Shown: positions 14,818 to 46,101, counted from the first letter of the stretch. The stretch: DNA of 64,000 nucleotides from Octopus bimaculoides (GCF_001194135.2 NC_068994.1:4684280-4748279); one strand, 5' to 3'. The notes: generated from the sequence alone by a model not told the origin. Made by a program: numbers and translations.

Positions 14818-16170
14818 ATGTGTTCTAATTCAGCTGTACAATACCCTCCCATTACAAACCATGTGAACTACCACGCCTGCAGTTTAGCATACTCTCAGGT
14901 CGGCATCACTCCCTCCTACCTCAGTTATAAGCAGAGGTATATCGAAAAGAAACCCTATAAATGCAATATCTGCCGTAAGCGGTTTGCATTGAGAGCCTAC
15001 CTGAAAAAGCATGAAATGGCTCCTGAGGCCGGCAAACATTTCACATGTATGTTTTGCGGCAAAGCTTTCCCGGAGCGTGACAAACTGCGTAATCATGAAC
15101 GTACTCACACCGGTGAGAGACCCTTCCCTTGTGAGCTTTGCGATATGGCTTTTGCTCAGAAAGACAAGTTGAAGATCCATCAACTGACTCACACCGGCAG
15201 TAAACCCTTTCAGTGTACCATATGCCACAAAGCCTTCTCTAGAAACGATAAACTTAAAATACACACCCGTTCTCACACAGGAGAGCGGCCTTTTGAATGC
15301 TTAATTTGTCGTCGCGCGTTCTCTCGCAACGACAAGTTAAAGCTGCATCAGCGGTCGCACACGGGTGAAAAACCATTTGAGTGCCCTGTTTGTCAACGGT
15401 GTTTTTCACGCAATGACAAGCTGAAAATCCATGAGAGATCACATACAGGTGAGAAACCGTTTAGCTGTGGGATTTGTCAGAAAGCTTTCTCTCGTAAGGA
15501 CAAGATGAAAATTCATGAATTCACACACAGTGGGGAAAAGCCATTTAGTTGTTCGCTTTGCTCAAAGTCCTTCTCTCGCAAGGACAAACTAAAATTGCAC
15601 GAGTTTACGCATTCAGGACAGAAGCCTTACAGTTGCGAAATATGCCGCCGTGCATTCTCTCGCAACGACAAGCTGAAGTTGCACCAGCGCACACACATAG
15701 CCAGTGCCATGGGTACAGAGGAGAACAAGATGAACAAATGCGACAAAGATTGCACCATGGCTGCTGCTACTGCACCACCGCCACCGCAACGATGTAACAC
15801 TGATAAACACAGCCAGTGTCACGCAGGGAACCATGCTGTCACCACACTGGTTGCATCTGCACCAACTTCGGTGCAGTCTTCGTCTATGATACCAACACCA
15901 GCTGCATGTTCACACCAAAGAATGCCCTCTCACTTGCCACATCTGCCACAGTTACCACCACTCACCCTCAATTCTCCTCCCATGGCTACGGCCTGCTCTC
16001 ACCAGATGTCGGCTTTGAACAACTTCAACTGGAAGAGGAATGTTCCCCCCATGACGTCTACATGGACTACAAACTGGGGTAACACCCTCAGCGTGCCGTC
16101 CTACAGCATCGGACAGAGGAAGTGTGAGAACCAAGAAGCAGTACACAGCATTCAAACCTTAATGCACTAA
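14818..16170 (+). CDS. C2H2 zinc-finger protein ZNF-A (450 aa; 9 fingers, finger 1 lacks the second His; His/Pro/Ser-rich C-terminus)
   Basis: Uninterrupted ORF with tandem C-x2-C-x3-F-x5-L-x2-H-x3-H units and TGE(K/R)P linkers. ATG directly follows a pyrimidine tract + AG (14816-17). AATAAA at 16397-16402. Confidence 0.92.
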   Translation: MCSNSAVQYPPITNHVNYHACSLAYSQVGITPSYLSYKQRYIEKKPYKCNICRKRFALRAYLKKHEMAPEAGKHFTCMFCGKAFPERDKLRNHERTHTGERPFPCELCDMAFAQKDKLKIHQLTHTGSKPFQCTICHKAFSRNDKLKIHTRSHTGERPFECLICRRAFSRNDKLKLHQRSHTGEKPFECPVCQRCFSRNDKLKIHERSHTGEKPFSCGICQKAFSRKDKMKIHEFTHSGEKPFSCSLCSKSFSRKDKLKLHEFTHSGQKPYSCEICRRAFSRNDKLKLHQRTHIASAMGTEENKMNKCDKDCTMAAATAPPPPQRCNTDKHSQCHAGNHAVTTLVASAPTSVQSSSMIPTPAACSHQRMPSHLPHLPQLPPLTLNSPPMATACSHQMSALNNFNWKRNVPPMTSTWTTNWGNTLSVPSYSIGQRKCENQEAVHSIQTLMH

Positions 16171-16792
16171 CTGACAACCCAGCCTGCCCTCTGTGAGGCT
16201 TCTCAAATCTGACAGTAAACTACTACATCATTGAATGTTGGTAGCTAACCACCCCAGCCAGCCAGCTATGCCCTGCCACTACCTGTGGCTCGGCTGTCCT
16301 AATGTCTACAACATGAACAACTCAACTCTGTATAAAAACAAACCCACCCTTAATCGACCCATTGTAATGATTTCACCATTGTATATGTCTCCAGTCAATA
16401 AAGTCTGATACCCAGTGGCTCCTCCCCCACTGGATACAGCACCATTTTACCAGCATTAAAACTGACAAACCACTGATCATGTGTGTTTACATACATACAT
16501 ATATGTTTTCTTTTTCTATTATTAATAATTGGCAGAATTTATAGAGTGACTCTAGGGCTGCGGGTTTTGTGTATTGGCACAGAGTTTTAATAAGTGCCAA
16601 TACACGGAAAACTCTTGGCTTTAGAGTTGCTCTCTAACTTTCACTGATTATTAATAATAATAAAACAAAAAATATATGTATGTATACTCATGTTTTGAGT
16701 TCTATTTTCCTATTTGTATCACCAAACATATACATATATATACATATATATATATATTTGTGTGTGCGTGTTTGCATGTTGTTGATCTAGGT

Positions 16793-17075
16793 CAGTGTTT
16801 CTCAAGCAAAGTTCACGTGACCCCTGGGAGTCCATAAGTGATTGGGGGTGGGGTCCATGGAAAAAATGTTGCTTTATTGCAAGAAACAGCTTGGTTTGTT
16901 TCCCTGGCATTTTGCATAGTTCGACCTACACAAGTGAATGGGTGAAAAATGAAATGGGAATTTGGAAAGAAGTATCTATAAAACTAGTTTTTAAACATCG
17001 AATGGCTCTGGGGGTCCACCAGAGTAAAATAGTAACCAAAGGGGTCCATAGACAAAAAATGGTTGAGAACCCCTG
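16793..17075 (+). mobile_element. hAT-Charlie-like MITE, copy 1
   Basis: Ends CAGTGTTTCTCAA / TTGAGAACCCCTG. Left flank ATCTAGGT resembles the Charlie target NTCTAGAN. A second copy lies at about 35075-35320. Confidence 0.7.
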
Positions 17076-19436
17076 GCCTGGATCAATTCTACCAACCACT
17101 GATCAAACATGAGATGGTCGTGGCTGTTTTGATTGTGACCATCTTTCCTTGTTCTATTGAGAAATAGTGTGCCTGGAATTTGCAAGAAAGTATGATGTGA
17201 TTTGAAAGATATTTAGCTGTTATTTCTAGCATGTCAAATAATCACCTGGCAGCTCCCATTTTAAGCTCATTAGTGTGTATATAGTGTATGTCGTCGTTGT
17301 GAATGATTGTTGATGGCAGGTAGGTGTGAAAGACAGGAGTGTTGCTGCTAGGACTTTGGCAATTTTCAGAGAGGCAGAATTATTAAACAGACGCACACAG
17401 GGAGTTATCTATCATTACGAGATGAGCTTCTTTTGGTTTCTGCATATCAAATCCACTCACAAGGCTTTGATTGGCCCAGGGCTATAATGAAAAATACTTG
17501 CCCAAGATGCAGCACTGTGGGACTGAACCCCAAATCTTGTGTTCGGGAAGCAAGCTTCATAACTCCATGGCTTTGACTGCTTTTGCTAATTGTTTTAGGT
17601 GCTTAAATAGTTGTGAGCAGATACAGACACCATTTTTGGCTTCATAACCCTTGACCCAGCAGAAGTTGGAGGGAAAGTGAGCTGAACCAACACTCAGGCT
17701 AGTACCCATTTCAGCTGAGTGGATGTTGAGTGCAGTGTGATACTCAGCTGGATGGAATAACTGGATCTGTGGATAATACTCATTGTTCAAAGGACAGTCT
17801 ACGGAGCCAACATGGTGGCCTCTTGGTCTGCTAGAAATAATAGCAAATCTCTTAAATTACATTTTGCTGTCTTAAACAAAAAAGGACACATTGGATCACT
17901 CGATTCACTATTTTTGGAAAAAAAGACAGGATGGTCACTGCTGGAATGTCTGCAGTTAGACAACCTATGAGGGTGTCTCTTTGGAAAATACTCAGCTCTA
18001 CTAAAGATTGAAGTCAAACCATTCCCTACTTAGAAAAAAAAGAAAGACAGAAAGGTTAGATAATAATCTGTGAGTCATTAAATGTTTCACGAGTCATTAG
18101 ATAATGTTATGTGAGTCACTAGGCAATGTTAAGTGAATCCTTAGATGCTGTTAGGGAGTCATGAGGTGCTGTTACATGAACCATTAAATGCGAGTCATTA
18201 GAAAATGAGTCAAGGTGGGAACTATCATGTGGTCGTCCCAATCTGCTAGAAATAACAACCAGTTCTCTTCAAATTGCACCCTACTGCCTTGAAAACAAGA
18301 AATGCAGGTATCCAGGATACCGTGTACTTCTGGAAACATTCTGTCTTGAAAATTAAAACTGGATGGTCATGGCTTGAAAGTCTTTGCTTGTAGTAAGTCT
18401 GTTGAACTGGGACTGGACATCACTGTTTTGTAATACAGGTATGAAGGCCAGCAATTGTTAGTGAAGGGGTCAAGTTAATGTAATCAAACTGGTGAAAAGA
18501 AGCTGTTTATTGTAATCACTTCAGAATGAAGTCTGATAACAATAACCCAATTGATGATATTGGTTTCAAATTTTGACACAAGGCCAGCAATTTTGGGGGT
18601 GGGGAGGGGCATAAGTTGATTACATCGATCCTCAGTGCTCAACTGGTATTCCTTATTTCTTTTACTGACCCTGAAAGAATGAAAGGCAAAGTTGACCTCG
18701 GCTGAATTTGAACTCAGAATGTAAAGACATGAAATGCTGCTAAGCATTTTGCCCAGCTTGCTACCCTTAATCCAAATGATAATATTAAGCAAATAAAGAG
18801 CACAGGTCCCACTAATTTTGATAAAAGCTAATTTAACCAGCAGCAGACTCTCTGTGTTCTGGGTTCAAATCCTGCCAAAGTCAACCTTTCAGTTTCAGGA
18901 TCAACAAAAAATCCCAATCCAGGGAGTGAATCGGTAGAACTGATCGGAGACCTTGTGGTATTTGTTCCAGCTTTTTGTGTTCTTGAGTTCAAATCCTGCC
19001 ATTGCCTACTTGGGTGGTAGACTTAATCCATTGCCTTATTTAACATCACCACCAGGCACCATGGATCCCTTCGACAGGCTCCATTCTGTTGCAGTCACAT
19101 CAGGTCTCTGGTTCAGGGATACCTCCTTCCCTCCCTCCTACCTGTCCCCTAAGCCCTTTAAAGAGTCCTGGACCCTGTATTTCCTCCTCATTAAAAAAAA
19201 GCTTAAATATTGATGGTAAGAAGCTCGCTTCCCAATCACATGGTTCCAGGTTCAGTCCCACTGCATGACACCTTGAGCAAGTGTCTTCTACTATAGCTTC
19301 AGGTCAACCAAAGCTTTGTGAGTGGATTTGGGTTGACAGAAACTGAAAGAAGCCCATTGTATATATATATATATATATATTATGTAAAACAATTAGGTTT
19401 GGTTCTGTGCGACTTAAATTTTTGTATGCTTAGATA

Positions 19437-19653
19437 CGAAGGTGTGTTGAAAAGTTCCTGGCTTAAAGGGTATCACGAAAGGCCTGGTTGGAGGCCCAAC
19501 CTTCCAAGTTCTTTTGCAGGGCTTAGAAAAACTGGAGGACCACTGCAATAAGTGTGTGAATCTGAGAGGGGAATATGTCGAATAAGATCATAATTAACTG
19601 ATCCTCCTGTGTTTTCTTTTACACAAAGCCCAGAACTTTTCAGTACTCCATTG
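19437..19653 (+). mobile_element. Mariner-derived MITE (about 215 bp), copy 1
   Basis: About 28 bp imperfect TIRs around TGAAAAGTTC, TA flanks. The internal part translates to the transposase C-terminus-like GLEKLEDHCNKCVNLRGEYVE*. Confidence 0.8.
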
Positions 19654-20975
19654 TATGTATGCATATAAGAATCTTTTCTACTATAGGTACAAGGTCTGGA
19701 TTTTGTGGGAAAGGGGACAGTTGATCACATCAACCCCAGTATGCAACTGGTACTTGATTTATCAACCTGGAAAGGATGAAAAGCAAAGTCAACCTCGGCG
19801 GAATTTGAACTCAGAACGTAGCGGCTGATGAAATACCGCGAAGTATTTTGCCTGGCATGCTAACGATTCTGCCAGCTTGCCAACTTAATCATCATCATCA
19901 TCATCGTTTAACGTCCACTTTCCATGCTGGCATGGGTTGGACGACTTGACTGAGGACTGGTGAACCAGGTGGCTCCAATCTGATTTGGCATGTAAGAATA
20001 ATATAACAAGGATGGAGAATATAGGTTTTAATAGCAAATCACATTTGTTTCTGCACCAAACACCAGCTTTAAGTTGTTGAGTTTACATTTATGTCTCATT
20101 ATGTGAGAATATTCTTTAGAATCATTCGATAATTAAATATTTTTCAGCAACAGCTGTGTGTGTGTGCTTGCTCAGGTGGAATGTGATCAATGCTTAATCG
20201 CATTCCACCTGAGCAAGCATCCACACAGCTGTTGCTGTAAAATATTTAATTATATATATATATATGCGTGGCTGTTGCCAGTACCGCCTGACTGGCCTTC
20301 GTGCGGGTGACACGTAAAAGCACTCACTACACTCTCAGTGGTTGACATTAGGAAGGGCATCCAGCTGTAGAAACTCTGCTAAATCAGATTGGAGCCTGGT
20401 GTAGCCATCTGGTTCACCAGTCCTCAGTCAAATCGTCCAACCCATGCTAGCATGGAAAGCAGACGTTAAACGATGATGATGTGTGTGTGTGTGTGTCCCA
20501 CCACCTCTACTTGACAATTGGCATTGGCTTCTTCACGTCCCTGTAACCGAGCAGTTCAACAAAAAAAACAATATAATAAGTATCGGGCTTCGTTTGACTA
20601 AAATTTCTTCAAGGCAGTGCCCCAGCTTTTTACATGGTACCAGCACCCACAAGCTCACAGGTCAAGTATTTCTCCCAAAGTGCTGGACAGTAGGACTGAA
20701 CTCAATATCACATGGTTAGGAAGCAAGCTTCTTACTCAAAGCCATGCCAGCATCTATGAGTGTTTATTGTTGGATTTGAAAACAAATTACATACTGGATT
20801 ATAATGCTTACCATCCTGAGAGCATGTACAGCACTCCCTTGGACACCCAGATTATACACAAGTAAATACTTCTTTTGTCACAAACTGATTTATTTAAGTG
20901 TCATGTTGTGTAGGCCATGTCTGCCCCTCGACTGAGTTTGATCCATAGACCTATAGTTTTCGGACATGTCATACT

Positions 20976-22817: not shown

Positions 22818-22851
<34 letters not shown>

Positions 22852-23124
22852 AGTCAACTTTAAATATAATCCCATAGATTAACAGTATGTAACATTACAA
22901 TCCTTGATTCCTGTTTTTTTTTCTTCAGGAAATGAGAGCCACAACATCACTAAACTCTTCATCAAGATATAGCCCTAGCCCTTACACTGCTCAATGGAAC
23001 CAAACTGGGGTTGCTTTTGTATTTTGTTTGTTTGCTTTTTTGTCATTAAACAGAATCTTTTCTGCAAGTGAAGCCTCAGCCTTCCACACGAATGGAGGAA
23101 CAATAAAATATCAAGGTAACTGCT

Positions 23125-23820
23125 TTAGGTGTTCCTTGTATGCACACGTTGGTGTTTTTTTAAATCACTACTTTGAGAATATTGTGCAGGACACAATTCA
23201 CATTTGAAAGGTTTTTCACTGCTATGGCTCATTCGATGTCGCTTCAAGAGACTGTATGTAGAGAAAGCAGCCGGACAAACTTCACACTGGAACGGTTTCT
23301 CACCTGTGTGTGTCCGGTGGTGCTGCTTCAGTGAAGAATTCCTAGAGAAAGCAGCTGAACAATAATCGCATTTATAGGGTTTCTCACCGGTGTGGATCAT
23401 GCGATGTTTCTTGAGGTCACAGTTTTGAGTGAACGCTGCTGAACAAAGGTCACACTTGAACGGCTTCAAGCCTGTGTGATTCATGTGGTGACGTTTGAGT
23501 AAACTACGCGTCGAGAATGCAGAGGGGCACTCTTCGCATTTGAATGGTTTCTGCCCTGTATGAGTGAGGCCGTGTTGTTTGAGAGAACTGTTGCGTGAAA
23601 ACGCTGCCCCACACGTGTAGCAGGTGAATGGTTTCTCCCCTGTATGAATCATGTTGTGTTTCTTTAGATCACTGCTCTGTAAGAACGCAGCAGAGCATAC
23701 ATTGCACTGGTATGGTCGCTGACCCTCGTGGATCAACTTGTGCCGTCTTAAGAGACTCAACGTTGATAACGAAGAACCACATATCTGACAGTGACACATC
23801 TTGACCAATACATCAGCCAT
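23125..23820 (-). CDS. C2H2 zinc-finger protein ZNF-B (231 aa; 8 fingers, almost no non-finger sequence)
   Basis: Intact ORF with 8 tandem fingers and TGEKP-type linkers. An in-frame TGA at 23836-38 closes the frame upstream, so an extra coding exon would need a nearby acceptor. Candidate AATAAA (minus strand) at 22677-82. Confidence 0.9.
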   Translation of the reverse strand: MADVLVKMCHCQICGSSLSTLSLLRRHKLIHEGQRPYQCNVCSAAFLQSSDLKKHNMIHTGEKPFTCYTCGAAFSRNSSLKQHGLTHTGQKPFKCEECPSAFSTRSLLKRHHMNHTGLKPFKCDLCSAAFTQNCDLKKHRMIHTGEKPYKCDYCSAAFSRNSSLKQHHRTHTGEKPFQCEVCPAAFSTYSLLKRHRMSHSSEKPFKCELCPAQYSQSSDLKKHQRVHTRNT

Positions 23821-26586: not shown

Positions 26587-26646
<60 letters not shown>

Positions 26647-27832: not shown

Positions 27833-27866
<34 letters not shown>

Positions 27867-28614: not shown

Positions 28615-28654
<40 letters not shown>

Positions 28655-29964
28655 ATATATGACAATTATAAGAAAAGTAGATAGATAGAGAGAGAGAGAG
28701 ATACAAAGATAGATAGAGTGAGAGATTCAGTTTGTTTCCCTTCTCCTTTTATCTATCCTAGTCTTCTCTATCACTGTCATATTTTAAACCACTTTCTCTG
28801 AATTCTTTGTTTCTTTAGCACCCCCCCCCACTCTCCCTCTCTTCTCTTCCAATTCTCTAATCCTTCTTTTTGCTTATTCAGTCATTCCCTCCTACTCACT
28901 CTATCCCTTCTCTTCCTCCTACTCTCTCTCTCTCTCTCTCTCTCTCTGTATATCTGATATCCAACTTGATGTCGTTATCCAACCGTCCATTTATTGATTT
29001 TAATTTTCGATTTTCAAACGATTTGCTTAAAATTATTGATTTCTTTTATTAACAGGGAATGAGGCCTAAGGAGAGGAAATAAGATTGGTGAAGTGCACGC
29101 TTTTCTCAAGGCTATCAGCAATTAGCTTAATATGATTAAACGAATTTTACTCTGGAAGTAAAATAATAAATTTTGACATATAGGGCCTAGGATCATACGT
29201 TGTGGCGGAACTGGGGAAAAGATGTAGTCTTTATTTAGATTACACATAAGCTAAATGGACCCCATTACTAGAATCGTGTTTTTTATAGTGACAACAGTGT
29301 GATTCGAACTCAAAATGTAAGGGGACCTAACTGCAAAACATTTTATCCGCCGTACTACCAATTTGAATACTGCCATCCTTATAATGATTGGTTTTAATAT
29401 AGGCATAAGACCAACAATTTTAAGATGGAGTTAGTCAATCCTATCGACTCTACTGTTACTTTATCACCCCCNNNNNNNNNNNNNNNNNNNNNNNNNNNNN
29501 NNNNNNNNNNNNNNNNNNNNNNNNNNNNNNNNNNNNNNNNNNNNNNNNNNNNNNNNNNNNNNNNNNNNNNNNNNNNNNNNNNNNNNNNNNNNNNNNNNNN
29601 NNNNNNNNNNNNNNNNNNNNNNNNNNNNNNNNCCCTATCGGCCTGACCTCGAATAATTCTTTCCACTATAAGTATAGAGGCGGAGAGAGGGGTAGTCGAT
29701 TATAACGACCCAGTACACAACTGGTATTTTATTTATTCACCTCAAAAAATAAAGACAAGCTGACCTTAGCGATATTTGAACTTTGAACACAGAGCCGGAC
29801 GAAATACCGCTAAGCATTTTGTCCGATGTTCTAACTATTCTGCCAAACCCATCTCCTTCGTTAGTATAATCAGACAGGGGACCACATTTTCCAGTGGGTT
29901 CGGCAAAAGAAGACCGATAAAATAAGTACTAGGCTTACAAAGAATACGTTGTTTTTTTTTTTTT

Positions 29965-30445
29965 TGAAACTTTTCTGCACTAATGCTTCAGGGGAATTGA
30001 AAATAAGGCCATTCCTAGTGTACTATTCAGAAAAACCCAGAGCCTTGAAAAACATTAACCAGAGTTCAGGGAGCTTCCAGCTGAAGGCCTGGGTTATGAG
30101 GAACCTGTTTACTGTATGGTTTACTGATGTGTCCCCTTTGAGATAGTCACATACAATACCAAGGGGACAGTCTTTCAATGAAGGGTTATTTTTGTTAATG
30201 TTGATGCTCCTTTACACCCTCTCAAATTCATGGACCAAACGCCACAGGAGTTTGATTTTATCAAAGTTCAATTTCCTACCTCACAACACAACTCCTCTGT
30301 TACAAACTCCATGGATCAGTAAGTGACTGCAGGCTTTAAAGAATTCTACACAAGGCACCGGTTTTGAAGCAAGTTTGTCTACTGATGTGAAATGGAAAGA
30401 GTTTGGGAAAAATCGCTTCACCATTGTGAATGCTGTGTTTAAAAA
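29965..30445 (+). mobile_element. Degraded pogo/Tigger-type transposase fragment (DDE_1 domain)
   Basis: CTNASGELKIRPFLVYYSEKPRALKN...KAWVMRNLFTVWF, then frameshifted DAPxHP, HNTTPLLQ/MDQ and FKEFYT motifs typical of Tigger transposases. Confidence 0.75.
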
Positions 30446-33400
30446 TTAAATCATATAAAGAGACTGAACCCGGATCCATGTGGTTGGGAAGCAACCTTCT
30501 TACCACACAGCCATGCCTGCACTTACATATATATTTTCCATCAAAAACAACTTTTACTTGGATGGAGCTGTGCTGAGGCTCCCCTCTGTTTCAACTCTTG
30601 TACACAGCGCATATCTACTCACCCCCAAACCTAAAGTTCTGCAGCCAAAACGAAAAGAAGAGTTTCAACTTGTGATGGTTAGATTGGTGTTTGATGTGCA
30701 ACCATTCCTGAAAGAGAGTCTGTGAGTTCCTTTAATGTCAGTTAGAGGGCCCTACACATTGTTACCCCACTACAGAATACATCATTAGCATGTCAAGTGT
30801 TAACCTTGTTATGAGTTTACATTTATTTTATGAATATCACAGCTGTTTTTCTTTATGGTTGTATGCTCTTCCTGTCACCAACCATTGTACAGCATGGACT
30901 GGAAATACTGACAGTGTTTATTCAGTGTTATAACTCCCCTTGACAGGTTGTCATTGCTGCATCATGTTGAGTGAAGACTCCTCTGTCGGTAGGACTCAAA
31001 CGTTTTTTGCATGATGTTAGGTTGATCAAAAATTTGAAAGATTTAATCAGTTATATCACCCTCCATAATTAATCTAATACTTGTTTTATTGACATCTATT
31101 TAGGAAATAGCTAAGTTAACCAAAATTGTTTCTGTAGTGAGCAACAATGCATTTCACCAATATACACAAAACTACATATGCAAACTTTTGTACAGTCTTT
31201 GGTAAATCCACAGCCAGAAGAAAATATTTGTTTGTACGAAGATGAATAATAATGGTTTGTTAGTAATTACTAAAGTCTTTTTCAATTTTGTTGTTTGGAT
31301 TTGTCTGTAAACCTGCTGAGGTAGATAAGGTGTCTGTTAATAAATTTGTCAACCTCATCCATTCACTTACCCAATTGTTCGTATTTCTCTCTCTCTTATG
31401 CTAAGCATTGATTTTTTTCCCCCATTTACTGCATTTACAACTGACACACTGCCAATTTCCTCTCTATTTCTGTTGTTAGGGTCCATGTCTCTTACCCATA
31501 AACGACTGCTGTTGTTATGCATTGGTCTAGGCTACTTGTTGTGAGGCAGACTGCAAGGTTTGATTTCACAATGCTGCTGAGATTGTTGAAAGAGATCCGA
31601 CCATGTATGAATCTCCTCTTTATTTCATTTTCTTAATCTTTTTCATTCATTCTTATTCTCTGTCCTAGCTGCTTGTTCTGTTTGATTCTCTTCCAATAAT
31701 TGGTGTAGATTTTATATTTATTAAGAATTAGTTGATGAGACATTCAGTCACTCTTCAGATTTTCACACCACATAACAATGCTGCAATGAAGAAATTACGT
31801 TGGTAAGAAACACATTGTGTCATTAATTACTGGTTTAGAGGGGGTAGGCTGTTCTGTATCTGAGTGAATTCTGTTGGTATTGCTAGATGACACCACATCT
31901 ATGCAGAGGAGAGAACTGGTTTCATCTGTGAGTGTCAGAGGAGAATACCCAGCTTCAGTATGGAGGTTCTGATTTTGAGAAATTTCAGTGGTTTTGCAAA
32001 TTTTGCACATTTAGTCCAGATGAATATTCTCCAATAGAAATGGACTCCAATAATAGCAGAGAGTTAGTATCTCAGATCTTCTGTTCAGTGATCTTGGTGG
32101 CTGTTTCAAGATCTGGAACTTTCCAGTTAAGTCTATTCTGTGATTTCCAGCTTCATTCATGCATTGGGTCGCTCCAATTAAAATATTCCAAGTTATGGGA
32201 GCATGTTTGGTCTCACAGTCCTTTGGTTTCCAAATGAATTGTGACAGAAGGATGGAATCTCCTTTCTTTTGGTATCTCAACCTGAATAAGTGCATATGAT
32301 TGTTATATTAACTCTTAAATGTATTTGCAGTAAGTCTCATAAATTCCTCATGATACAATTTGCATATATTATGTTACTTCTTTTACCACCTAAGAGAAAC
32401 ATGATCTTCTAAAGTTAGTAGTTTATTTCTGATTCTACAACTTGGATGTTGGAGTGTGGTGTGTGTATATGCATGTGTGTGTGTCTAAGATTATAGTGTG
32501 AGATCTAAAAAGCATTGCTATCCAGGTAACAATAGCCTACTTTACCTTTATTAATATTGAAAACTTTATAGTGTTTATGTGTTTAGAAAATAGGACCTTG
32601 TTATGGATAAAGAGTATCTAACATTATCCTGATGGTGAATAGCGAATTGAACCAAACTATTATCCTCTTTTTGATTATGCTGCTGTATGGCGCAAAGATT
32701 GCTTGCATACTTGTTAGTTGATAAGGTCACCGCATGTTAGCACATCATGTTAAAACCGTCAAGGCGATAGAGTGGAAATTCTAATTACAAAATCTACAAA
32801 GTTAACTATGGCTGAGAGTATTTTTATTTCAATATGCAAATATAACCCTTTCATTTGAGTTGTTGATGGGTTCATATCTAGTGTAATATATTTTCATAAG
32901 TGACTATGACTCTCCTTAGGTTGGTGCTAATAATGATGCTAGAACTGATAATTCCTATCCATTTTTTTTCTTGATCTATCCATAATGTGTGACTGTTCTA
33001 ACAGATGATTCCTCGACTATTATCTCTGTGTGTGCACATTATATATATGTATATATGTATGTATATCTATGACTCGCATGTTATATAACTCTCAAGTTAT
33101 ATAACACAAATATAAAAACATATGTATGTGTGAGTGTGTGTCGACCATGTATATATGATAAATATAATAACACAAATACATAATGCACCAAAAAAATAAA
33201 GTAAATATAAAAAATATATCAATGGAAACTGAAAGTAATGTTTATGAAAAAAAATCAAACTCCATCCTGCCTGACAGAACTGGAATTTATCAAACAAAAA
33301 ATACAACAAAGGACAAACCAATGAATTATATATAAAAAAAAAAAAACCATGGATTATCTACAATAATGTTGGTATATTTGTTATTTTTATTTTTTGTTGT

Positions 33401-33519
33401 TGGTGGGTGGGTGAGTGGGGGGTAGTGATGTTCATGTGGGATTATAGAGATGGGGGGGGGCTGATGTTTGTTGCCGATTAGATCGAATACAAAGATGAAA
33501 AGCATGAAGCAGAACATAA

Positions 33520-34310
33520 AAAGAAGCTATATATATGTATATATATATATATATGCATGTATGTATATATACATGCATATATATATATACATATATATAC
33601 ATACATACACATATATATATATATATTACATATATATGTATATGTATACATATATTTATATATATATATATATACATATCTATATACACACAGATATGTA
33701 TGTATATACATACATATATATATATATATATGTATATATAAATACATACATAGATATAAAAATATATATGTGCATATATGCCCGTATATACATGTGTATG
33801 TATATAACCAAATGTTTTAGAGAAAAAAAAAAATTAATAAAAATAACAAGACAAAAATATGTATGTAAAAAAAAATATTAAAAAAAACAAACAACTTGTT
33901 TCAAAAATTTTCTTTTTAAAGACAACAGCAACAACAACAACAACAACAAGGAAACTATGAAAAGGGAAGAAATAGTTTTGTTTGATATTTTTTTTACAAA
34001 CATATTTTTGTCTNNNNNNNNNNNNNNNNNNNNNNNNNNNNNNNNNNNNNNNNNNNNNNNNNNNNNNNNNNNNNNNNNNNNNNNNNNNNNNNNNNNNNNN
34101 NNNNNNNNNNNNNNNNNNNNNNNNNNNNNNNNNNNNNNNNNNNNNNNNNNNNNNNNNNNNNNNNNNNNNNNNNNNNNNNNNNNNNNNNNNNNNNNNNNNN
34201 NNNNNNNNNNNNNNNNNNNNNNNNNNNNNNNNNNNNNNNNNNNNNNNNNNNNNNNNNNNNNNNNNNNNNNNNNNNNNNNNNNNNNNNNNNNNNNNNNNNN
34301 NNNNNNNNNN

Positions 34311-34350
<40 letters not shown>

Positions 34351-34552
34351 CATATACATACATATGTATTTTATGTGTATATAGATAGATATATATATTC
34401 ATACACAGATACATATGCACATACACACATATGTAAACATATGAAATGAATATATATATATACATATATATATATGTATATTAATATAAATACATACATA
34501 TATATGTTTATATAGATGTGTATATATATATATATATGCATAAATATATATA

Positions 34553-34601
<49 letters not shown>

Positions 34602-34620
34602 GTATGTATGTATGCATTTT
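33520..34620. repeat. (TA)n/(TACA)n low-complexity region with N-gap; similar tracts near 40250-40600, 61790-62120 and 63550-63890
   Basis: Directly visible. These tracts produce the spurious Y/I-rich ORFs in the track. Confidence 0.9.
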
Positions 34621-35074
34621 TATTTGTGTGTGTATCTCACTCATCCTCGAATGTTGAGTAGAATCAAGGATTACAGTTTAGCAACAACAGTGGTAGTGGA
34701 GTTATCGGTGGTGGTGGTCATCATCATGGCTGCAGTGCCAAAAGCGGGGTGGGGGGTGCTGCTGTTGTTAGTGATCGTATGAGTGATGACAGTTGTATTA
34801 ACAACAATCAATGATGGTGACTGATGACTGATGGCTGAATGTAGGGACTGACTCTCTCCATCTCCGGGGATGAACAACATTCTTATCATAAGCCACCAGA
34901 AGGTAGTCGACTCAATTTAGGATCATTCTATGACGAATGAAAATCAGATTGGGAAACGGAAGGTGGGAAAGAGGGCGCTGGACTCCCTTCGCCCCAGGAC
35001 GCATAAGGCTGGAGTTTAACCTGGTTTCTATGATGTATAAGTGATTGAAATTACTTATAGCAAAATGGTAAATT

Positions 35075-35320
35075 GGGGATCCACAGTAGAATTTTAAGGA
35101 TCCATGAAGAATTTTGCTTTGGGTGTATATACTGCAAGAAACCGCTTGGTTTGTTTCTCTTATATTTTATATAGTTCAACCGGCAGAAATTAAAATAGGA
35201 ATTTTGAAAGAAGTTTCTATAAAACTAGGTTTTAAGCATCAAATGGATATGGGAGAGGGGGTACCAGAGTAAAATAATAATGAAAGGGGCCCATAGGTTA
35301 AAAAGGGTTGAGAATTACTG
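35075..35320 (+). mobile_element. hAT-Charlie-like MITE, copy 2 (left end missing)
   Basis: Colinear with 16830-17075. Ends TTGAGAATTACTG. Confidence 0.65.
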
Positions 35321-36085
35321 CTTTAGGTGACTATCAAAACAGAAGGTATTTATTAGTAGCCTTGGTGGCTACTAATGATATTACTACAACTTCAAATAAT
35401 GACAGGAGTGGCCACAGTTTTCATGTTACTCTCTTGCTCTGGTCAAGATGACCTTTTCCCATCTTCTGGTCATTCATCGCAGACGTTCTCAGCACACGCA
35501 AAAATAAAACAAAATGTTACCTAGCACCATCTGTGTGATGATGATAGCCAATAGTCTAAACTTCTAAGTTGTAGATGTCCAGACCAACTATCAACTGGTC
35601 ACACGTACAACAGAAGATATAGACAGCTTCTTATGTTGTAGGAGGGCTTATAAGGGATAATACAAAGCTCCTAGGTGGGGCTGGAGGTAGGTTCTGGATT
35701 GAAATGGACCAGTGAGAAATTTCCTGCCCGATAAGACACCAATTCATTGTACATAGTATTGGTTTCAAATTTTGGCACAAGGCCAGCAATTTTGGGGGAA
35801 GGGGCCAAGACGATTACAATGACCCCCAATGGTCAACTGATACTTATTTTATCAACTCTGAAAGGATGAAAGGCAAAGTCAACCCCAGTGGAATTTGAAC
35901 TCAGAATGTAGTGACGGGCAAAATGGCGCTAGGCATTTTGCCTGGCGTGCTAACGATTCTGCCAGCTCACAGCCTCACGCCATAAATAATAGAAACATGG
36001 TAACTGGAATCTGTCTCTGGCAGGCCCATGGAAACAACTTGGTTGCAACTGTACCACTACCACTGCTGCTACTACACATTATACA

Positions 36086-36147
<62 letters not shown>

Positions 36148-36824
36148 TATGTATAGCATCCAAATATATGCACATTGATATATATATATATTTATACATA
36201 CATATATACATACACATACACACATACTTGTGTCAACATTACGTTACACACATTTAAACAGCACAAGCTCATGCATACTGGTATTGTGTATATATATACA
36301 CATATATGTATGCATGCATGTATGTGTGTATGTATATATATTAGTCTCTCTGTTGGAAAACACACTCAAGATATGGAACATGACAGAAAAAATCCTAAAG
36401 AAAAGAAAAAAAAGAAACAACAAAAATAAAACAAGAAACAACAAAACTTTTGACATTAAATGACACCGAGGTGGGGGAAGGGGGTAAATATTAGAAGTTG
36501 GCATGGCTGCCTGGTTTAGGGGTCAGCCATCAAAGGAAGTTCATATTAGAAGACAGGCTCTCTCTTAAGGGGCCACATAAAAAAACCCCTTTCAGGAGAT
36601 ATTAGCATCATATTAGCATCTTATTAGCAGATGTTATTAGGTTAGTCCTTGGTGAGGTGTGTGATGCGAGGGGTAGGGGTATGGTGGGGGATTGGGGACA
36701 GNNNNNNNNNNNNNNNNNNNNNNNNNNNNNNNNNNNNNNNNNNNNNNNTGGGGGCGGGCTGAAGTGTGAGAGGAGGTCATCATATGTATTTGATATTTTC
36801 CAATAATAATAATAATAATAATAA

Positions 36825-37059
36825 TGGGCTCAAATTTTGACACAAGGCCAGTAATTTCGAGGTGGTGGGGGAGTTAAGTTGATTACATCGACCCCGGTGT
36901 TCAACTGGTACTTATTTTATTCACTCCCAAAAAGATGAAAGGCAAAGTTGACCTTGGCGGAACTTGAACTCACAATGCACACATGGATGAAAATGCTGCT
37001 AAGCACTTTGTCCAGTGGGCTACCAGTTCTGCCAGCTTGCGAATAAATAAATAGATAAA

Positions 37060-37091
<32 letters not shown>

Positions 37092-37183
37092 AATAATAAT
37101 AATAATAACTGATTCTGATTTAGGCACAAGGCTAGCAATTTTTTTGAGGAGAGAGGATTAGTTGATACTATGAAACCCAGTAC

Positions 37184-37225
<42 letters not shown>

Positions 37226-37491
37226 TAATAACAACAATAACAAGAACAATTTGTGTGGTACAAAGTAATATGGAAGAGGTAGGGGATGGGGAGGTATGGG
37301 ATGGGGGAGGTGGTGGATAGGAGGGAAGAGGAAGGTGTATAGTTAGCTGACTTGAACCCAGAGGAACAAAAGGCAAAGTCGACCCCAACAACATTTGAAC
37401 CTGGAAGTGGTGATCACCAGACTAGGCACTTCCTCTCAGTGTCTTTCTTTCCCCAAGTGCCAACTCCACTAAGTTTCTTACATGATGATGG

Positions 37492-37534
<43 letters not shown>

Positions 37535-38593
37535 AATAATAATGATTTCAAGTCTTGGCACAAAGCCAGAATGATAATAATGAGAGTAACAACAACAATT
37601 AATAATATTCATACAGATGACGATGATAATAAAAAAAAGTTTTTTTAAGTCAGGCACAAAGCCCTTATGAAAGGCAAATAGTGTTAAGTGTCTTGTTTAA
37701 GGACACAGTAAAACATCTACAGCAGAAAGAGTTGAAAATTCAACAGAGAGGATGGTGGAAAATGATAATAATAATAATAATGGTTTCAAATTTTGCCATA
37801 AGGGCAGCAATTTTGGGGAAGGGGGATAGTTGACCTCAGTACTTAACTGGTACTTAATTTATCAACCCCTGAAAGGATCAAAGGTAAAGTCAACCTCGGC
37901 GGAATTTGAACTCAGGACGTAGGGGCAGACAAAATACTGCTAAGCATTTTGTCTAGTGTGCTAACGAGTCTATCAGCTTGCCACCTAATAATAATAATAA
38001 TGATAATAGTAATAATAATAATAATAATAATAGTAATGGTTTCAGATTTTGACAGGAAATTTTTAGCAGGGGTCGTTACTCAATTCCACCAACGCCAGGC
38101 CAGGGCTAAAGAATGACAGGCAAAGTTGACTTAAGTGCCATTTGAACTCAGAATGTTAAGATCAAAACTGCCGCTAAGCATCTTGTCTGACGTTCTACCG
38201 ATTCTGCTGGCTCACTTCGGCAGAAGGGCCAGTATTTTAGGGAGAGGGGTTTAGTTGGTTACAGCAACCCCAGTGTTCAGCTGGTACTTTATTTTAGCGA
38301 CCGCGAAGGGATGAAAGACAAAGTTGACCTCGGCAGGATTTGAGCTCAGCACAAAAAGTGTGGAGAAATGCTACTAAGCATTTTCTCTGAAATGAGAAAG
38401 ATTTTGCCAGCTTTCCACCTTAATAATAATAATAATAATAATAATAACAACAACAATCAGTAACTTAGACTCAAGGCCACATGATTCTAGGGGTGGATTG
38501 CAGTTGATGACTAAATATTTCAATGACATGCTATAAGAACGAAAGGCAAAGTCAAACCCTGTTGAATTTTAACTCAGTTCTGTAAAGAAATGA

Positions 38594-38629
<36 letters not shown>

Positions 38630-38843
38630 CCTTTCTACTACAGGCACAAGGCCTGGAATTTGTGGGGAGCGGGATAGTCGATTACATCGACCCCAGCACT
38701 TGACTGGTACTTAATTTATCGACCCCGAAAGGATGAAAGGCAAAGTCAACCTCGGCAGAATTTGAACTCAGAACGTGAAGATGGATGAAGTGCCGCTAAG
38801 CATTTTGTTTGGCATGCTAATGGTTCTGCCAGTTCACCACCTT
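36825..38843 (-). repeat. Stack of 6-7 co-oriented SINE-A copies and fragments separated mostly by (AAT)n
   Basis: Copies at about 36825-37041, 37110-37180, 37780-37987, 38037-38215, 38216-38421, 38462-38580 and 38630-38843. Confidence 0.75.
38630..38843 (-). mobile_element. SINE family A, representative full copy (tRNA-like head; central TTGCCTTTCATCCTTTCGGGGTCGATAAATTAAGTACCAG core), flanked by (AAT)n
   Basis: A-box-like TGGCAGAAxCxTTAG and B-box-like GAGTTCAAATTC on the minus strand. Other copies at about 1965-2140, 3447-3662, 18561-18763, 19670-19887, 24225-24930, 29670-29850, 35761-35980, 36825-38421 and 57480-57610. Confidence 0.8.
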
Positions 38844-39196
38844 AATAATAATAATGATAATAACAATAATAGTTGTAATAACAATATTAATTCATCATCG
38901 TCATCTTTGAATGAAATGGTTGTTTGTTAATGAAAGAAACGAAGCTTATATTAGAGGCAGGACGTTTAGGTTGGCAACTGTGAGGTATAACTGTGTGAAT
39001 TTTGGGACATTTTTTTTGATAAAGAGAGAAATATATATATATATATATAAATATATATATATATGTATATTAGAAATGTACAACGTGAGCAGCAGTGACA
39101 AGCAAATGACACCAGCTGCACATTACGGTAGATATATATTAGAATGGAACACTGGAAATTGGTAAGGCAAAAAATAAAATCAAAATAATAATAATA

Positions 39197-39234
<38 letters not shown>

Positions 39235-39757
39235 AATAATAATAATAATAATCAATGATGAAAAAAAAAAAAAANNNNNNNNNNNNNNNNNNNNNNNNNN
39301 NNNNNNNNNNNNNNNNNNNNNNNNNNNNNNNNNNNNNNNNNNNNNNNNNNNNNNNNNNNNNNNNNNNNNNNNNNNNNNNNNNNNNNNNNNNNNNNNNNNN
39401 NNNNNNNNNNNNNNNNNNNNNNNNNNNNNNNNNNNNNNNNNNNNNNNNNNNNNNNNNNNNNNNNNNNNNNNNNNNNNNNNNNNNNNNNNNNNNNNNNNNN
39501 NNNNNNNNNNNNNNNNNNNNNNNNNNNNNNNNNNNNNNNNNNNNNNNNNNNNNNNNNNNNNNNNNNNNNNNNNNNNNNNNNNNNNNNNNNNNNNNNNNNN
39601 NNNNNNNNNNNNNNNNNNNNNNNNNNNNNNNNNNNNNNNNNNNNNNNNNNNNNNNNNNNNNNNNNNNNATATATATATATACATATATATATATTTATAT
39701 ATATATATATATATACACACATCTATGTACACAAGCAGTGTGTAGGTGTGAACATGC

Positions 39758-39801
<44 letters not shown>

Positions 39802-40521
39802 CATGCACACACACACGTGTAAATACATACTAACACACATTAATGAACACAGTATGTCCCAAAGTAAGACAAGTTAATTAAATTATTGTCCTTTCCTTTT
39901 TGTTTTAAGACTTTCTGCTCTCACACAAAACCTCTTCCAAAGCATAAAGGTCTTCTAACCCTGAGGAGAGAGGGGGGTTAGCTAAGGGCCGTACTGAACT
40001 CCGATCTCATGTTGTGAAGCAGATGAGATACCTCTAAGCATCTGTTTTCTTTGCACACACCATTCTCAGAGGCTCTGGTACCTTATTCCCTTCAACAGCC
40101 AAACTATTTGAGGCAATGTGGAATACAATGTTCTACACTGACATCACATTTGGCAAAATTTGGTATCTTCATTGTGACTTACATACTGTAACTTCTTGCA
40201 AGTAGACACACCATGTATACATACAGAGACAATAAATTTATAATAAATATAGCATACAAAGGATAATAAATACATACATTTATCAGTTAGATGTATGTAT
40301 ATGTGCACATATGTATGCACGTGTGTGTGAGTGTATGTGTGTGTATATATATATATTTATATATATATACATATAACTCATAGTAGCATGAAAATATGGA
40401 CGTAAAACCAGCAAATGAATGATGTATATATAATTATATATTCATATATATATACACACACATATACATACATATGTACACATATACACATATGTATATG
40501 GATATATGTGTGTATATCTAT

Positions 40522-40566
<45 letters not shown>

Positions 40567-43506: not shown

Positions 43507-43538
<32 letters not shown>

Positions 43539-43683
43539 CATTATTACTATCATTACAACTACTAATATTAACAGTTTGTGCTGCTGCTGCTGCTGTTGTT
43601 GTTGTTGTTATTTTCATATCTATGAATGTTCCAAATATTATTGGTTGTTTGATTGGTTAGGTTGTTTTTAATTTTTAAAATTT

Positions 43684-46101
43684 TTATTTGTCATTGCCGT
43701 AGTGGTCGGAGTTACTCTTAGAAGGTGCGTGAATGCCTTGGATGTTGTTCCAAGAAGTTTGTTTACCTTGCTTGACCCCACAGGAATAGCTCGAAGGAAC
43801 GCTAGGCCAGCTGGAACCAAGCAAAGGAGGCATGGGGTACCCTCTAGACCACAGATAGTTGCTCTCCCAACTCTGTGGCATTTCGTGCAGATATGCTGGG
43901 GTGGATGTATGAGAAACTGGGATTGAAGGAGTCTGTAACTGGGTGGATTGCACATGAGGATCTCGGTGATGTGCTAATGACATGGGCCCGGGGTGGGGTG
44001 AACCACCCTGATTGACTTTCATGCTGTTTTTATGTGAAGACGATGAGATTGGTGGTGATGAAGAATTTGGTATGTGCTGATGATGTTTGTTGCTATGTGT
44101 TTCTGGGCTGTATGTATTAAATGGGGAAGAGCTTTTGTTCTGCGGATGTGTGGAGTGAGTAGGCGTGCTGTTCCCACTCAACATCGAAGGGGGCGGTTGA
44201 GGGAGGGGAGGCTCGCAGCCGGGTCGAGGCCGTTTGTGAGTGGCAATATGAGATTCACTCTCACATGTGCTGAATGCAGACGGAGGCTTTTCTTGGGTGT
44301 GGTTCGAGGACTGATGACTCATTCGGCTTCCACTGTTCAACAAAGATGAAGAAGAGTTTGGAGATGACAGCGAATGCATTTGCGATGCCTGTGGTTGTGG
44401 ATTCTTCGTGAAGAGTTCACAACCTGTACGTGTGCGCCTATGATTGTTTAAGTTTGCCTTTTGCGAGAAAGATTTCCCACAACTTTCACACTTAAATGGC
44501 TTCTCTCCAGTATGAGTACGAAGATGAGTTTTCAAGTTACCAGCCTGCGAGAATACCTTAGGACAAAGGTCACAACAATATGGTTTCTCTCCAGCATGGG
44601 TGCGAAGGTGAAGCTTCAAATTACCTCTCTGGCTAAAAGCTTTGTCACACAGGTTACATTTAAATGGTTTTTCGCCTGTGTGCGTTCTCATGTGATTTTT
44701 CAAATTTATTTGAAGAGTAAATTCTTTGGGACAATAATCACATTTATACAGCTCCCCGGTGTGTATACGTTCATGGATTTTGAGGAAAAACTGGTTACAA
44801 AATGGTTTCTTGCAGAACTGACAATAGTAGAGCTCTCCTGTGTGGAGTCTTTTGTGGTCGTTTAAATTAATCTTCTGGGAAAAGGCTTTCCCACAGACAT
44901 CACAGGCAAATGGTTTCTCACCTGTATGAGTTCTGAGATGGAGTTTTAAGTTACCTCTTTGGCTGAAAGCTTTTGAACAAACATGGCACTGAAATGGTCG
45001 GTCACCAGTGTGTGTTCTTTCATGATTTTTAAGATTGATTTTCTGCGAAAATGTTTTGCTACAATATTCACATTTAAACACTTCACCAGTGTGTGTACGC
45101 TCATGGATCTTCAAAAAAAACTGGTTACAAAATGATTTCTTGCAGTAGCTACAATAAAATAACTCTCCAGTGTGTATACGCTTATGATCATTCAAGTTGA
45201 TCTTTTGAGAAAATGCTTTTCCACATATGTCACATGCGAATGGCTTCTCTCCTGTATGGGTTCTCAAATGAAGTTTTAAGTTACCTCTCTGACTAAATGC
45301 TTTATTACAGACATTACATTGGAATGGTTTCTCTCCTGTGTGTGTTCTTAAGTGATTTTTCAAATTTATCTGTAAAGTGAAAGATTTTGTACAGAACGTG
45401 CATTTATACAACTCCCCTGTATGTGTACGTTCGTGTATTTTTAGAAAAAACTGGTTACAAAATGGTTTCTTGCAGAACTGACAATAGTAGAGCTCTCCTG
45501 TGTGAAGTCTTTTGTGGTCGTTTAAATTAATCTTCTGGGAAAAGGCTTTCCCACAGACATCACAGGCAAATGGTTTTTCCCCAGTGTGCGTTCTAAGGTG
45601 AAGCTTCAAATTACCACGCTGACTAAAAGATTTATTACAAACTGTACACTGGAATGGCTTCTCTCCAGTGTGAGTTCGCAGATGATTTTTAAGGTTGATT
45701 TTCTGTGTGAAGGCTTTTCCACAGTAACTGCACTCAAAAGGTTTCAGTCCTGTGTGAGTGAGTTCATGGTTCTTTAGAAAAAACTGATTTGAGAATCCTT
45801 TTTTACAGAAACTACACTGGAAATCTTTTTCCAATGGCTGATGTTGCGGTAGCTTGTTGTCATACATATGCGAGGGAGAGTGATGGGGTGGAAGCGACTC
45901 TCTGCCAGCCTCGTCCATTGCTGAAGGTGATCCTAGAGTGGTAGGAACATCTTTCCTGCCCATCTCACCTGAACTGTAAGTCTTTTCAGCAAGTGGCATT
46001 GTCTTTTCTGGACACTTTGGATAACTGCTTGGATAAACCGGCTGCCCACTATACAGCGGTGGTTGGTTGGTCATTGGAAACATCGGTTGAAAAGGATACA
46101 T
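43684..46101 (-). CDS. C2H2 zinc-finger protein ZNF-C (805 aa; 17 fingers, last one ends H-x3-R; Pro/Ser/His-rich N- and C-termini)
   Basis: 2.4 kb intact ORF with a finger array at about 44416-45822. AATAAA overlaps the stop codon (43683-88, minus strand). Confidence 0.93.

Follow-up and report, generated by a model that had tools for sequence, protein, structure and literature searches.

The stretch of DNA analysed here, called the window throughout, comprises 64,000 nucleotides of the Octopus bimaculoides genome (assembly GCA_001194135.2, chromosome CM046614.1, ~4.68-4.75 Mb). A six-frame regular-expression scan detects C2H2 fingers at three places only, which correspond with the open reading frames (ORFs) of three neighbouring zinc-finger (ZNF) genes, ZNF-A, ZNF-B and ZNF-C (Table 1). 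All three encode C2H2 (Krueppel-type) poly-ZNF proteins, as judged by tandem C-X2-C-X12-H-X3-H fingers with TGEKP-like linkers, and the Pfam families zf-C2H2 and zf-H2C2_2 match the ORFs with E-values of 1e-38 to 1e-122. When each finger is reduced to a helix key, made up of its residues at -1, 2, 3 and 6, the keys recur with periods of one, three and four fingers in ZNF-A, ZNF-B and ZNF-C respectively. These periods had been proposed in an earlier note on this DNA (the original prediction), together with the idea that the proteins read microsatellites carried by retroelements; key listing, permutation and comparison with other proteins confirm the periods.

Table 1. Position and character of the features described in the text, counted from the first nucleotide of the window.
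Feature	Position	Strand	Description
ZNF-A ORF	14818..16170	+	450 aa; 8 canonical C2H2 fingers and 1 degenerate finger at 14962-15039
ZNF-A fingers 3-8 ('period 1')	15214..15696	+	helix R-x-D-K-L/M-K-I/L, canonical TGEKP-type linkers
ZNF-A C-terminal W-rich segment	15985..16122	+	against the ZNF-C motif: BLASTP E 0.03; hhalign probability 60%, E 8.6e-5
ZNF-B ORF	23125..23820	-	231 aa; 8 fingers, keys TSLR/QSDK/RSSQ in strict period 3
Assembly gaps (four)	29472-29632, 34014-34310, 36702-36748, 39275-39668		within 29472..39668, between ZNF-B and ZNF-C
SINE S1, reference copy	38594..38891	-	tRNA-like head, ~214-bp body, (ATT)n 3' tail, (ATT/GTT)n 5' flank
ZNF-C ORF	43684..46101	-	805 aa; N-terminal region, 17 fingers, low-complexity region, conserved C-terminal motif
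ZNF-C C-terminal motif	43729..43893	-	W-rich, SWE-NYLW-R-PP-W, with ...W...VPS...C.VKQGKQ; no Pfam family
ZNF-C tail fingers 16 and 17	44428..44574	-	16, QAGNLKT; 17, QKANLNN, second His replaced by Arg
ZNF-C fingers 1-15	44596..45816	-	4-finger units a (NQFFLK[N/I]), b (QKINLKN/LQINLKN), c (QRGNLKL), d (QKINLND)
Repeat S3, reference copy	53812..54120	-	ends in (GAT)7
SINE S2, reference copy	55800..56003	-	internal (TA)n(TG)n

The helix keys of ZNF-A run EDKN, QDKI and then RDK(I/L) six times; its 'period 1' covers only six of the eight canonical fingers. Averaged over all finger pairs, key identity is 0.71 in this protein; none of 239 other proteins that have eight fingers or more exceeds 0.52, the highest value in that set. 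The three-finger cycle of ZNF-B runs 2.7 times, and its observed lag identity is matched in 357 of 100,000 permutations of finger order. For ZNF-C, in which the keys NFF(N/I), QINN or LINN, QGNL and QIND run 3.75 times before QGNT and QANN, the corresponding count is 0 of 100,000, with the caveat that finger b alternates between two helices and so adds a period-8 overtone. The program TRF finds 3.4 copies of a 330-nt period in this gene, and the linkers are also periodic: six-residue, proline-less TGELYY or TGELYK sequences flank finger a in units 2-4, with TGEKPFx elsewhere.

Nei-Gojobori counts on 24-codon finger modules, comparing fingers of the same phase with fingers of different phase, indicate that the periodicity is old. 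In same-phase pairs the proportion of synonymous differences (pS) is 0.88-0.93 for ZNF-A, 0.98-1.04 for ZNF-B and 0.82-0.95 for ZNF-C, with nucleotide identities of 61%, 58% and 74%. The proportion of nonsynonymous differences (pN) in these pairs is nevertheless lower in the helix than in the framework, at 0.14 against 0.29 for ZNF-A, 0.17 against 0.31 for ZNF-B and 0.06 against 0.14 for ZNF-C, whereas different-phase pairs show the usual reverse pattern, helix pN (0.40-0.48) exceeding framework pN (0.26-0.31). The median difference between same-phase fingers is 7 of 21 residues in ZNF-A, 9 in ZNF-B and 4 in ZNF-C. By the definition of internal array duplication in PMC13541613, at least two adjacent fingers related to a second such block, ZNF-C is a member of that class; the median for ZNF-B exceeds the limit of 5 edits set there, yet its helix keys recur exactly. 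Same-phase fingers of ZNF-B are in fact almost as unlike as unrelated fingers (9 edits compared with 11), and their contact residues are nevertheless retained.

One pair of ZNF-C fingers departs from this picture. Fingers 4 (~45502-45564) and 12 (~44842-44904) are almost the same in nucleotide sequence, with a pS of 0.07, every other same-phase pair being saturated, and the gene has a self-match of 468 nt at 82% identity and an offset of 660 nt. The similarity of fingers 4 and 12 looks like a local gene-conversion or partial-duplication tract.

Comparison between species extends the evidence for ZNF-C. Its best match is P0001, a 'zinc finger protein 2 homolog' from O. vulgaris; a protein identical to P0001 is encoded, with three nucleotide differences, in assembly GCA_006345805.1, which we take to be O. 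sinensis. P0001 resembles ZNF-C in its N-terminus, its C-terminus and the types and order of its helices, and has 13 fingers where ZNF-C has 17, a gap of exactly one 4-finger unit (44596-45816 compared with L003:10001-12064) that leaves the helix cycle in register. The tail fingers are unambiguous orthologs and have a pN of 0.02-0.05 with a pS of 0.73-0.86, and the 10-kb flanks at the O. vulgaris locus (22 kb) align to the window through copies of short interspersed elements (SINEs) only. On both counts the two species are deeply diverged at neutral sites, and the helices are invariant. The cephalopod paralogs P0032, which lies 1.3 Mb away on the same chromosome, P0029 and P0008 draw on the same classes of helix, in cycles of 3-4 fingers that are less strict, and R-x-D-K-L helices predominate in P0180, a ZNF-A-like protein of Argonauta. 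Reiteration is therefore a trait of the family.

Synonymous sites of ZNF-C are themselves unevenly conserved. Codons 90-260 (fingers 1-6; 45322-45834, minus strand) and codons ~735-790 (the C-terminal motif; 43732-43899, minus strand) are 97-99% identical in nucleotide sequence to O. vulgaris, third positions included. Third-position identity is 0.93-0.97 in these two stretches, compared with 0.4-0.7 in the remaining fingers, whose amino-acid identity is 90-100%. The most negative RNA-folding z-scores of the coding sequence coincide with them, at -4.5 and -4.2 (nt ~300-600) and -3.0 (the last segment folded). The frozen sites may reflect a constraint on mRNA structure, for instance as a substrate of A-to-I (adenosine-to-inosine) editing by ADAR enzymes; such editing substrates are abundant in coleoids.

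We conclude from these substitution patterns that the three genes are intact and kept by selection, that the arrays arose by old internal duplication of a module of one, three or four fingers, and that the contact residues have since been held by selection. Four observations together show that selection has maintained the reiterated specificity: saturation at synonymous sites of same-phase fingers, drift of their frameworks, conservation of their contacts, and the unchanged helices of ZNF-C in O. vulgaris. Neutral recent duplication, named in the original prediction as the outcome that would undo it, does not account for the periodicity. As the contact residues are held alike while the frameworks drift, each protein contains one reading module several times over, always in the same register.

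Outside the fingers, the most distinctive feature is a tryptophan-rich motif at the C-terminus of ZNF-C, in which alignment identifies an invariant W, E, N, Y, W, R, P and W. A word-indexed homolog search with the C-terminal 84 residues gave no matches; phmmer, run exhaustively over 1.8 billion cluster representatives, then recovered a small, cephalopod-restricted family, with the motif in 9 proteins at E<=1e-3 and in 4 at E<=1e-10 (P0001 at 1e-43, P0241 at 2e-24 and P0029 at 7e-17). All motif-bearing representatives with a named source are octopod. The W-rich segment at the end of ZNF-A is suggestive of a diverged copy of the same family motif, and ZNF-B has neither this motif (SWE-NYLW-R) nor any other non-finger domain. 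We regard the motif as a candidate effector module.

Pfam detects no family other than zinc fingers in the three ORFs at E<=0.01, and no match in their non-finger parts at E<=1. In particular KRAB (PF01352), SCAN (PF02023), BTB and ZAD (PF07776) are not found in the ORFs or in these parts, in agreement with the original prediction. The statement applies to the ORFs, since that of ZNF-A is the 3' end of a 1385-residue gene model, which runs past the fetched locus, and is probably its last exon; a polypyrimidine tract and a splice-acceptor-like sequence (ttcttcaAG, then ATG) precede its start (window 14790-14820 and upstream; L004:17651-20696). The model may itself be partly artefactual, because the window DNA upstream of ZNF-A has low-complexity or transposable element (TE)-like translations, no convincing coding exons and a gap of 590 Ns. 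For ZNF-B and ZNF-C the gene calls have a single exon each, and the called products are the same as the ORFs. Exact-sequence look-up of the three ORFs among sequence clusters, with and without the stop codon, gave no entries, and a sequence search of the PDB returned generic poly-ZNF structures only (ZFP568, Aart, CTCF and PRDM9), with no informative helix matches. Generic poly-ZNFs dominated the full-length searches with both ZNF-A and ZNF-C, of which that with ZNF-C alone gave an ortholog; the best cephalopod matches to ZNF-A are paralogs of 47-53% identity, and no ortholog of ZNF-A or ZNF-B is present among the loci retrieved.

Three interspersed repeat families, S1, S2 and S3, dominate the window, and their copies surround the three ZNF genes. 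S1 is represented by 17 high-scoring segment pairs; an (ATT)n tail follows 6 of the 11 copies with an intact 3' end, and another (ATT/GTT)n tract is frequently present at the 5' flank, as expected for the SINE in (AAT)n that had been described. The second SINE of that description, with (TGG)n and (TA/CA)n, is recognisable in S2: about 6 of its 9 copies contain an internal (TA)n(TG)n tract, and some have (CCA)n, equivalent to (TGG)n, farther 3' (for example 59018-59032). S3 is a non-coding repeat of ~290 bp, 9 of whose 10 copies terminate in (GAT)n; the reported (GAT)n tails are thus present, whereas their assignment to RTE elements finds no support from a reverse transcriptase or endonuclease. 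Ten further ORFs of at least 100 residues in the window have no Pfam match, no reverse transcriptase or endonuclease and no sign of an autonomous long interspersed element (LINE). ARAGORN and Rfam report no tRNA or RNA family in the window, so the tRNA-like heads of the SINEs are too degenerate for these tools. The order S2 body, (TA)n, S3 body, (GAT)n, (TG)n and (CCA)n-rich end recurs at 51388-51824 (minus strand) and 20266-20510 (plus strand), which may mean that S2 and S3 belong to a single composite SINE, or that one has repeatedly been inserted in nested fashion with the other.

By the canonical rules of recognition, the N-terminal finger of an array reads the 3' triplet, Asp at +2 favours G or T at the 5' base of the adjacent triplet, and N, D or T at +6 favours A, C or T. 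These rules were combined with the Zinc Finger Tools modules tabulated in PMC5260015, where RSDKLVR corresponds with GGG, QSSNLVR with GAA, QSGDLRR with GCA and TSGELVR with GCT. The predicted site for ZNF-A is 5'-(KGG)6-NGA-AGC and that for ZNF-B is (GCA-GTN-ANG)n, with a 9-bp unit. For ZNF-C the prediction is (CAA-NAA-AAA-NNN)n, mostly of the xAA class, finger a (N-F-F-I) being unpredictable and possibly a spacer. In the window, (KGG)5 with no more than one mismatch occurs 18 times at ~10 loci, compared with 0.04 expected, and the ZNF-C pattern occurs 87 times, compared with 3.4 expected, largely in (CAA/TAA)n tracts that include S1 flanks. By these predictions, the proposed match between motifs and microsatellites has a possible counterpart for ZNF-A, whose site would fit (TGG)n, and for ZNF-C, whose site would fit (AAT/AAC)n, both classes lying partly on SINE tails here, and none for ZNF-B.

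The best-supported mechanism is that the proteins read periodic or reiterated DNA, to which we give a little less than an even chance. Maintained, reiterated specificity is what a periodic DNA target would be expected to produce, and the strict cycle of contact residues, kept through saturating synonymous divergence, argues that the reiteration is itself functional. A reiterated module would gain affinity and occupancy wherever its cognate unit of 3, 9 or 12 bp is repeated or densely clustered. The six R-D-K fingers of ZNF-A, with their TGEKP linkers, would read ~18 bp of (G/T)GG triplets, ZNF-B would read repeats of the GCA-GTN-ANG 9-mer, and in ZNF-C four sets of spacer finger a and three xAA readers would read A-rich CAA-NAA-AAA blocks ~12 bp apart, which in a (YAA)n tract would fit at every third base. 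From the predictions for ZNF-A and ZNF-C it follows that the most probable sites of high occupancy would be low-complexity tracts with 3-bp periodicity, such as the SINE tails in (CCA/TGG)n and (ATT/GTT)n would often supply here. Output would pass through non-finger parts of the proteins, for example the W-rich C-terminal motif of ZNF-C, diverged in ZNF-A. That the targets are specifically microsatellites carried by retroelements is plausible from the predicted sites of ZNF-A and ZNF-C and unsupported for ZNF-B. It is a speculative extension, and in our view an improbable one, that some cephalopod C2H2 lineages have been selected so that occupancy scales with tract length, SINE-borne (TGG)n and (AAT/AAC)n serving as length-tunable docking sites across the genome for proteins with an effector motif of their own, a 'rheostat' of a SINE-dominated genome.

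Several considerations weigh against reading of such repeats. The predicted sites of all three genes come from the recognition code, which performs poorly for natural poly-ZNFs: 5% of predictions for human KRAB zinc-finger proteins matched ChIP-exo (chromatin immunoprecipitation with exonuclease) motifs (PMC10547256), and long arrays frequently engage subsets of their fingers only (PMC13541613). Any A-rich or G-rich periodic position weight matrix finds low-complexity DNA, and for finger a of ZNF-C no preference of base can be predicted. Occurrences of the ZNF-B pattern in the window number 10, compared with 3.65 expected, and 2 of 100 shuffles reach 10; no repeat here fits its predicted unit beyond chance. 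Since 5 of the 10 trinucleotide repeat classes occur in the window, the agreement of ZNF-A and ZNF-C with local tracts carries little weight; the pattern counts mostly show that such microsatellites exist, and agreement for two of three genes is not statistically meaningful. (GAT)n is the predicted target of no finger set. Arrays of period 3 and 4 imply target periods of 9 and 12 bp, which are not microsatellite units, an argument from which ZNF-C is partly exempt in that most of its fingers share the xAA class. The cross-species evidence for helix conservation comes from ZNF-C, and the invariance of its helices between species is not the signature of an arms race of the kind associated with KRAB zinc-finger proteins (KZFPs).

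The main rival explanation, which makes no appeal to microsatellites or TEs and which we consider somewhat unlikely, regards the three proteins as part of the coleoid C2H2 expansion and as conserved transcription factors of neural or developmental function, in which several equivalent DNA-binding modules serve dispersed single-copy promoter or enhancer motifs, either through the best-fitting module or by bridging two sites. Human C2H2 proteins assayed by GHT-SELEX (genomic high-throughput systematic evolution of ligands by exponential enrichment; PMC13541613) normally engage one or another of their sub-arrays, and the same study lists 140 human proteins with internal array duplications, among them ZNF775, whose period of 4 has been conserved since marsupials. 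The non-canonical linkers, which split ZNF-C into blocks of three fingers, the strong conservation of its helices between species, which fits conserved gene targets, and the expression of coleoid C2H2 duplicates mainly in the nervous system (PMC12513265) are consistent with it too. Equivalent modules have more difficulty with the pattern of divergence: human duplicates tend to diverge in specificity (PMC13541613), whereas here the specificity residues are the best conserved and the frameworks drift, a pattern less easily explained if a single copy were enough. ZNF-A, moreover, has six identical readers on canonical linkers, the architecture expected for contiguous reading. A non-functional origin, with the periodicity left behind by unequal crossing-over or by gene conversion during recent duplication or concerted evolution, would account for the low pS of fingers 4 and 12, for the 82%-identical 468-nt self-match of ZNF-C at its 660-nt offset and for the variation in unit number between species. 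We consider it very improbable, given that all other same-phase pairs are synonymously saturated at nucleotide identities of 58-74%, that helix pN is below framework pN within a phase, that the same-phase frameworks of ZNF-B are nearly as unlike as those of unrelated fingers (9 and 11 edits) and that the ZNF-C structure is shared with O. vulgaris.

Two further explanations seem to us to have little chance of being correct. The proteins could be repressors engaged in a KZFP-like arms race, silencing the surrounding SINE and LINE families through their bodies or tails; the absence of KRAB, SCAN, BTB and ZAD from the ORFs in Pfam searches, ZNF-C helices that are invariant across two species with saturated synonymous divergence, the opposite of rapid turnover, a C-terminal motif family of 9 representatives, which is tiny and not an expanding clade, and an unconvincing fit of the predicted sites to SINE bodies all speak against this. 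It draws support from the copies of S1, S2 and S3 around the genes, from the enrichment of predicted octopus ZNF motifs in TE consensus sequences (PMC10547256) and from the proposal of repeat-rich coleoid genomes as an arena for such conflict (PMC12513265). Equally, the ligand could be something other than double-stranded DNA, whether RNA, a single-stranded or structured nucleic acid (G-quadruplex or Z form) or a repetitive protein partner. Finger a of ZNF-C is aromatic at both +2 and +3 and has atypical linkers, and G-rich (TGG)n and alternating (TA/TG)n tracts can form non-B structures, for which a role as ZNF targets has been argued (PMC12539977), whereas most fingers are canonical C-X2-C-X12-H-X3-H modules with TGEKP linkers and the classical contacts (R or Q at -1; N, D or K at +3).

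Internally duplicated finger arrays and zinc-finger proteins that bind repeats are both known already, and the octopus genes join that kind; judged from the substitution patterns, their unusual feature compared with known arrays is that selection has preserved the reiterated specificity. The fingers of PRDM9 are nearly identical in DNA and differ at contact residues under positive selection, ZFY and ZFX have a two-finger periodicity, and Xfin is a further periodic array. Like these, the octopus arrays change by steps of whole fingers or whole units, and yet they are the reverse of PRDM9, with contacts kept and with frameworks and synonymous sites diverged. Among human proteins, ZNF775 has homologous arrays at fingers 1-3, 5-7 and 9-11, and ZNF721 recognises alpha-satellite sequences through its duplicated arrays (PMC13541613). 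The likeness lies in the duplication of blocks of adjacent fingers within one array, and in the long-conserved period of 4 in ZNF775; in the human set, where duplicates are defined by no more than 5 edits per finger, predicted specificity tends to diverge between the copies, whereas the octopus fingers differ by up to 9-11 of 21 residues and keep their specificity residues alike.

Repeat binding itself has precedents. ZSCAN4 binds a (CA/TG)n microsatellite in vivo (PMC7083622, PMC10785592); it has four non-periodic fingers and a SCAN domain and recognises a 7-bp motif within the repeat, and its binding is demonstrated, whereas that of the octopus proteins is predicted. Engineered zinc-finger arrays that read GGAA microsatellites (PMC9374162) resemble the octopus arrays in that a reiterated module reads a tandem repeat in register, and to that extent offer proof of principle for the proposed mechanism; they are artificial and designed module by module, whereas those of the octopus occur naturally, and for finger a of ZNF-C no specificity can be predicted. 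The tetrapod KRAB zinc-finger proteins, such as ZFP92, which binds B1/Alu (PMC10166502), are likewise polydactyl C2H2 genes in repeat-rich genomes, some of which bind simple repeats or SINEs. The octopus proteins differ from them in having ORFs without KRAB, no rapid turnover of contact residues and, as putative effector part, a different C-terminal motif.

Frog KRAB proteins (P0089 and its relatives) were considered as analogues and rejected, as their finger clusters are split by spacers of 75-159 residues with KRAB-like segments. These anuran matches to ZNF-C (P0089, P0090, P0013 and nine others) are forms of a conserved protein whose 24 fingers are grouped in six clusters of four, set apart from one another and nearly identical in their helices (RHTSLLI/QRQHLTT/WRSELxK), and represent another kind of reiterated ZNF architecture.

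The octopus repeat landscape is SINE-dominated and its C2H2 genes are greatly expanded (PMC9068888), with ~1,800-2,800 C2H2-domain genes in coleoids, the octopus total being computed from that paper's '165, or 9%'. Studies of the expansion (PMC9068888, PMC12513265) concern the same species, superfamily and SINE-dominated genome, and cover copy number, phylogeny and expression, not helix periodicity or the C-terminal motif; PMC12513265 leaves the TE-borne binding sites of coleoid ZNFs as a next step. The motifs predicted for octopus ZNFs are reported to be TE-enriched and often simple repeats (PMC10547256), a remark to which the original prediction, a reasonable hypothesis, comes close. The three genes provide a clean, testable case for what coleoid C2H2 proteins bind. 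If occupancy of SINE-tail microsatellites does depend on repeat length, they would link the SINE expansion of the octopus mechanistically to its ZNF expansion; failing that, they remain examples, like human ZNF775, of conserved proteins that bind DNA through several modules.

The four assembly gaps between ZNF-B and ZNF-C adjoin simple sequence, namely poly-C/G, (AT)n or poly-A, and none falls inside an ORF, so the reading frames are unaffected and only the distance between these two genes and the repeat census are uncertain. The majority of gaps in the window, including 2677-3266, 34014-34310, 39275-39668 and 61025-61034, adjoin microsatellites or homopolymers of the types (ATC/ATT)n, (AT)n, poly-A and poly-C/G, and the microsatellite content of the window is therefore underestimated, just where the hypothesis needs it.

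Two further simple-sequence tracts bear a resemblance to predicted sites. A perfect 9-bp tandem repeat, (ACTGCTACT) in 3.1 copies, lies at 13906-13933, ~900 bp upstream of ZNF-A; the reverse complement of ACTGCTACT, read cyclically as GCAGTAGTA, fits 5 of the 7 specified bases of the GCA-GTN-ANG unit predicted for ZNF-B, and the fit of GCAGTAGTA is probably due to chance. At 414-620 there is a degenerate G-rich tract of ~200 bp with trinucleotide periodicity, in which (TGG)n decays to GCAGTGATG- and GTAGTGACA-like units and which ends in GGGGTGGGGGGG; the best local matches to the predicted ZNF-A and ZNF-B sites are both inside this tract.

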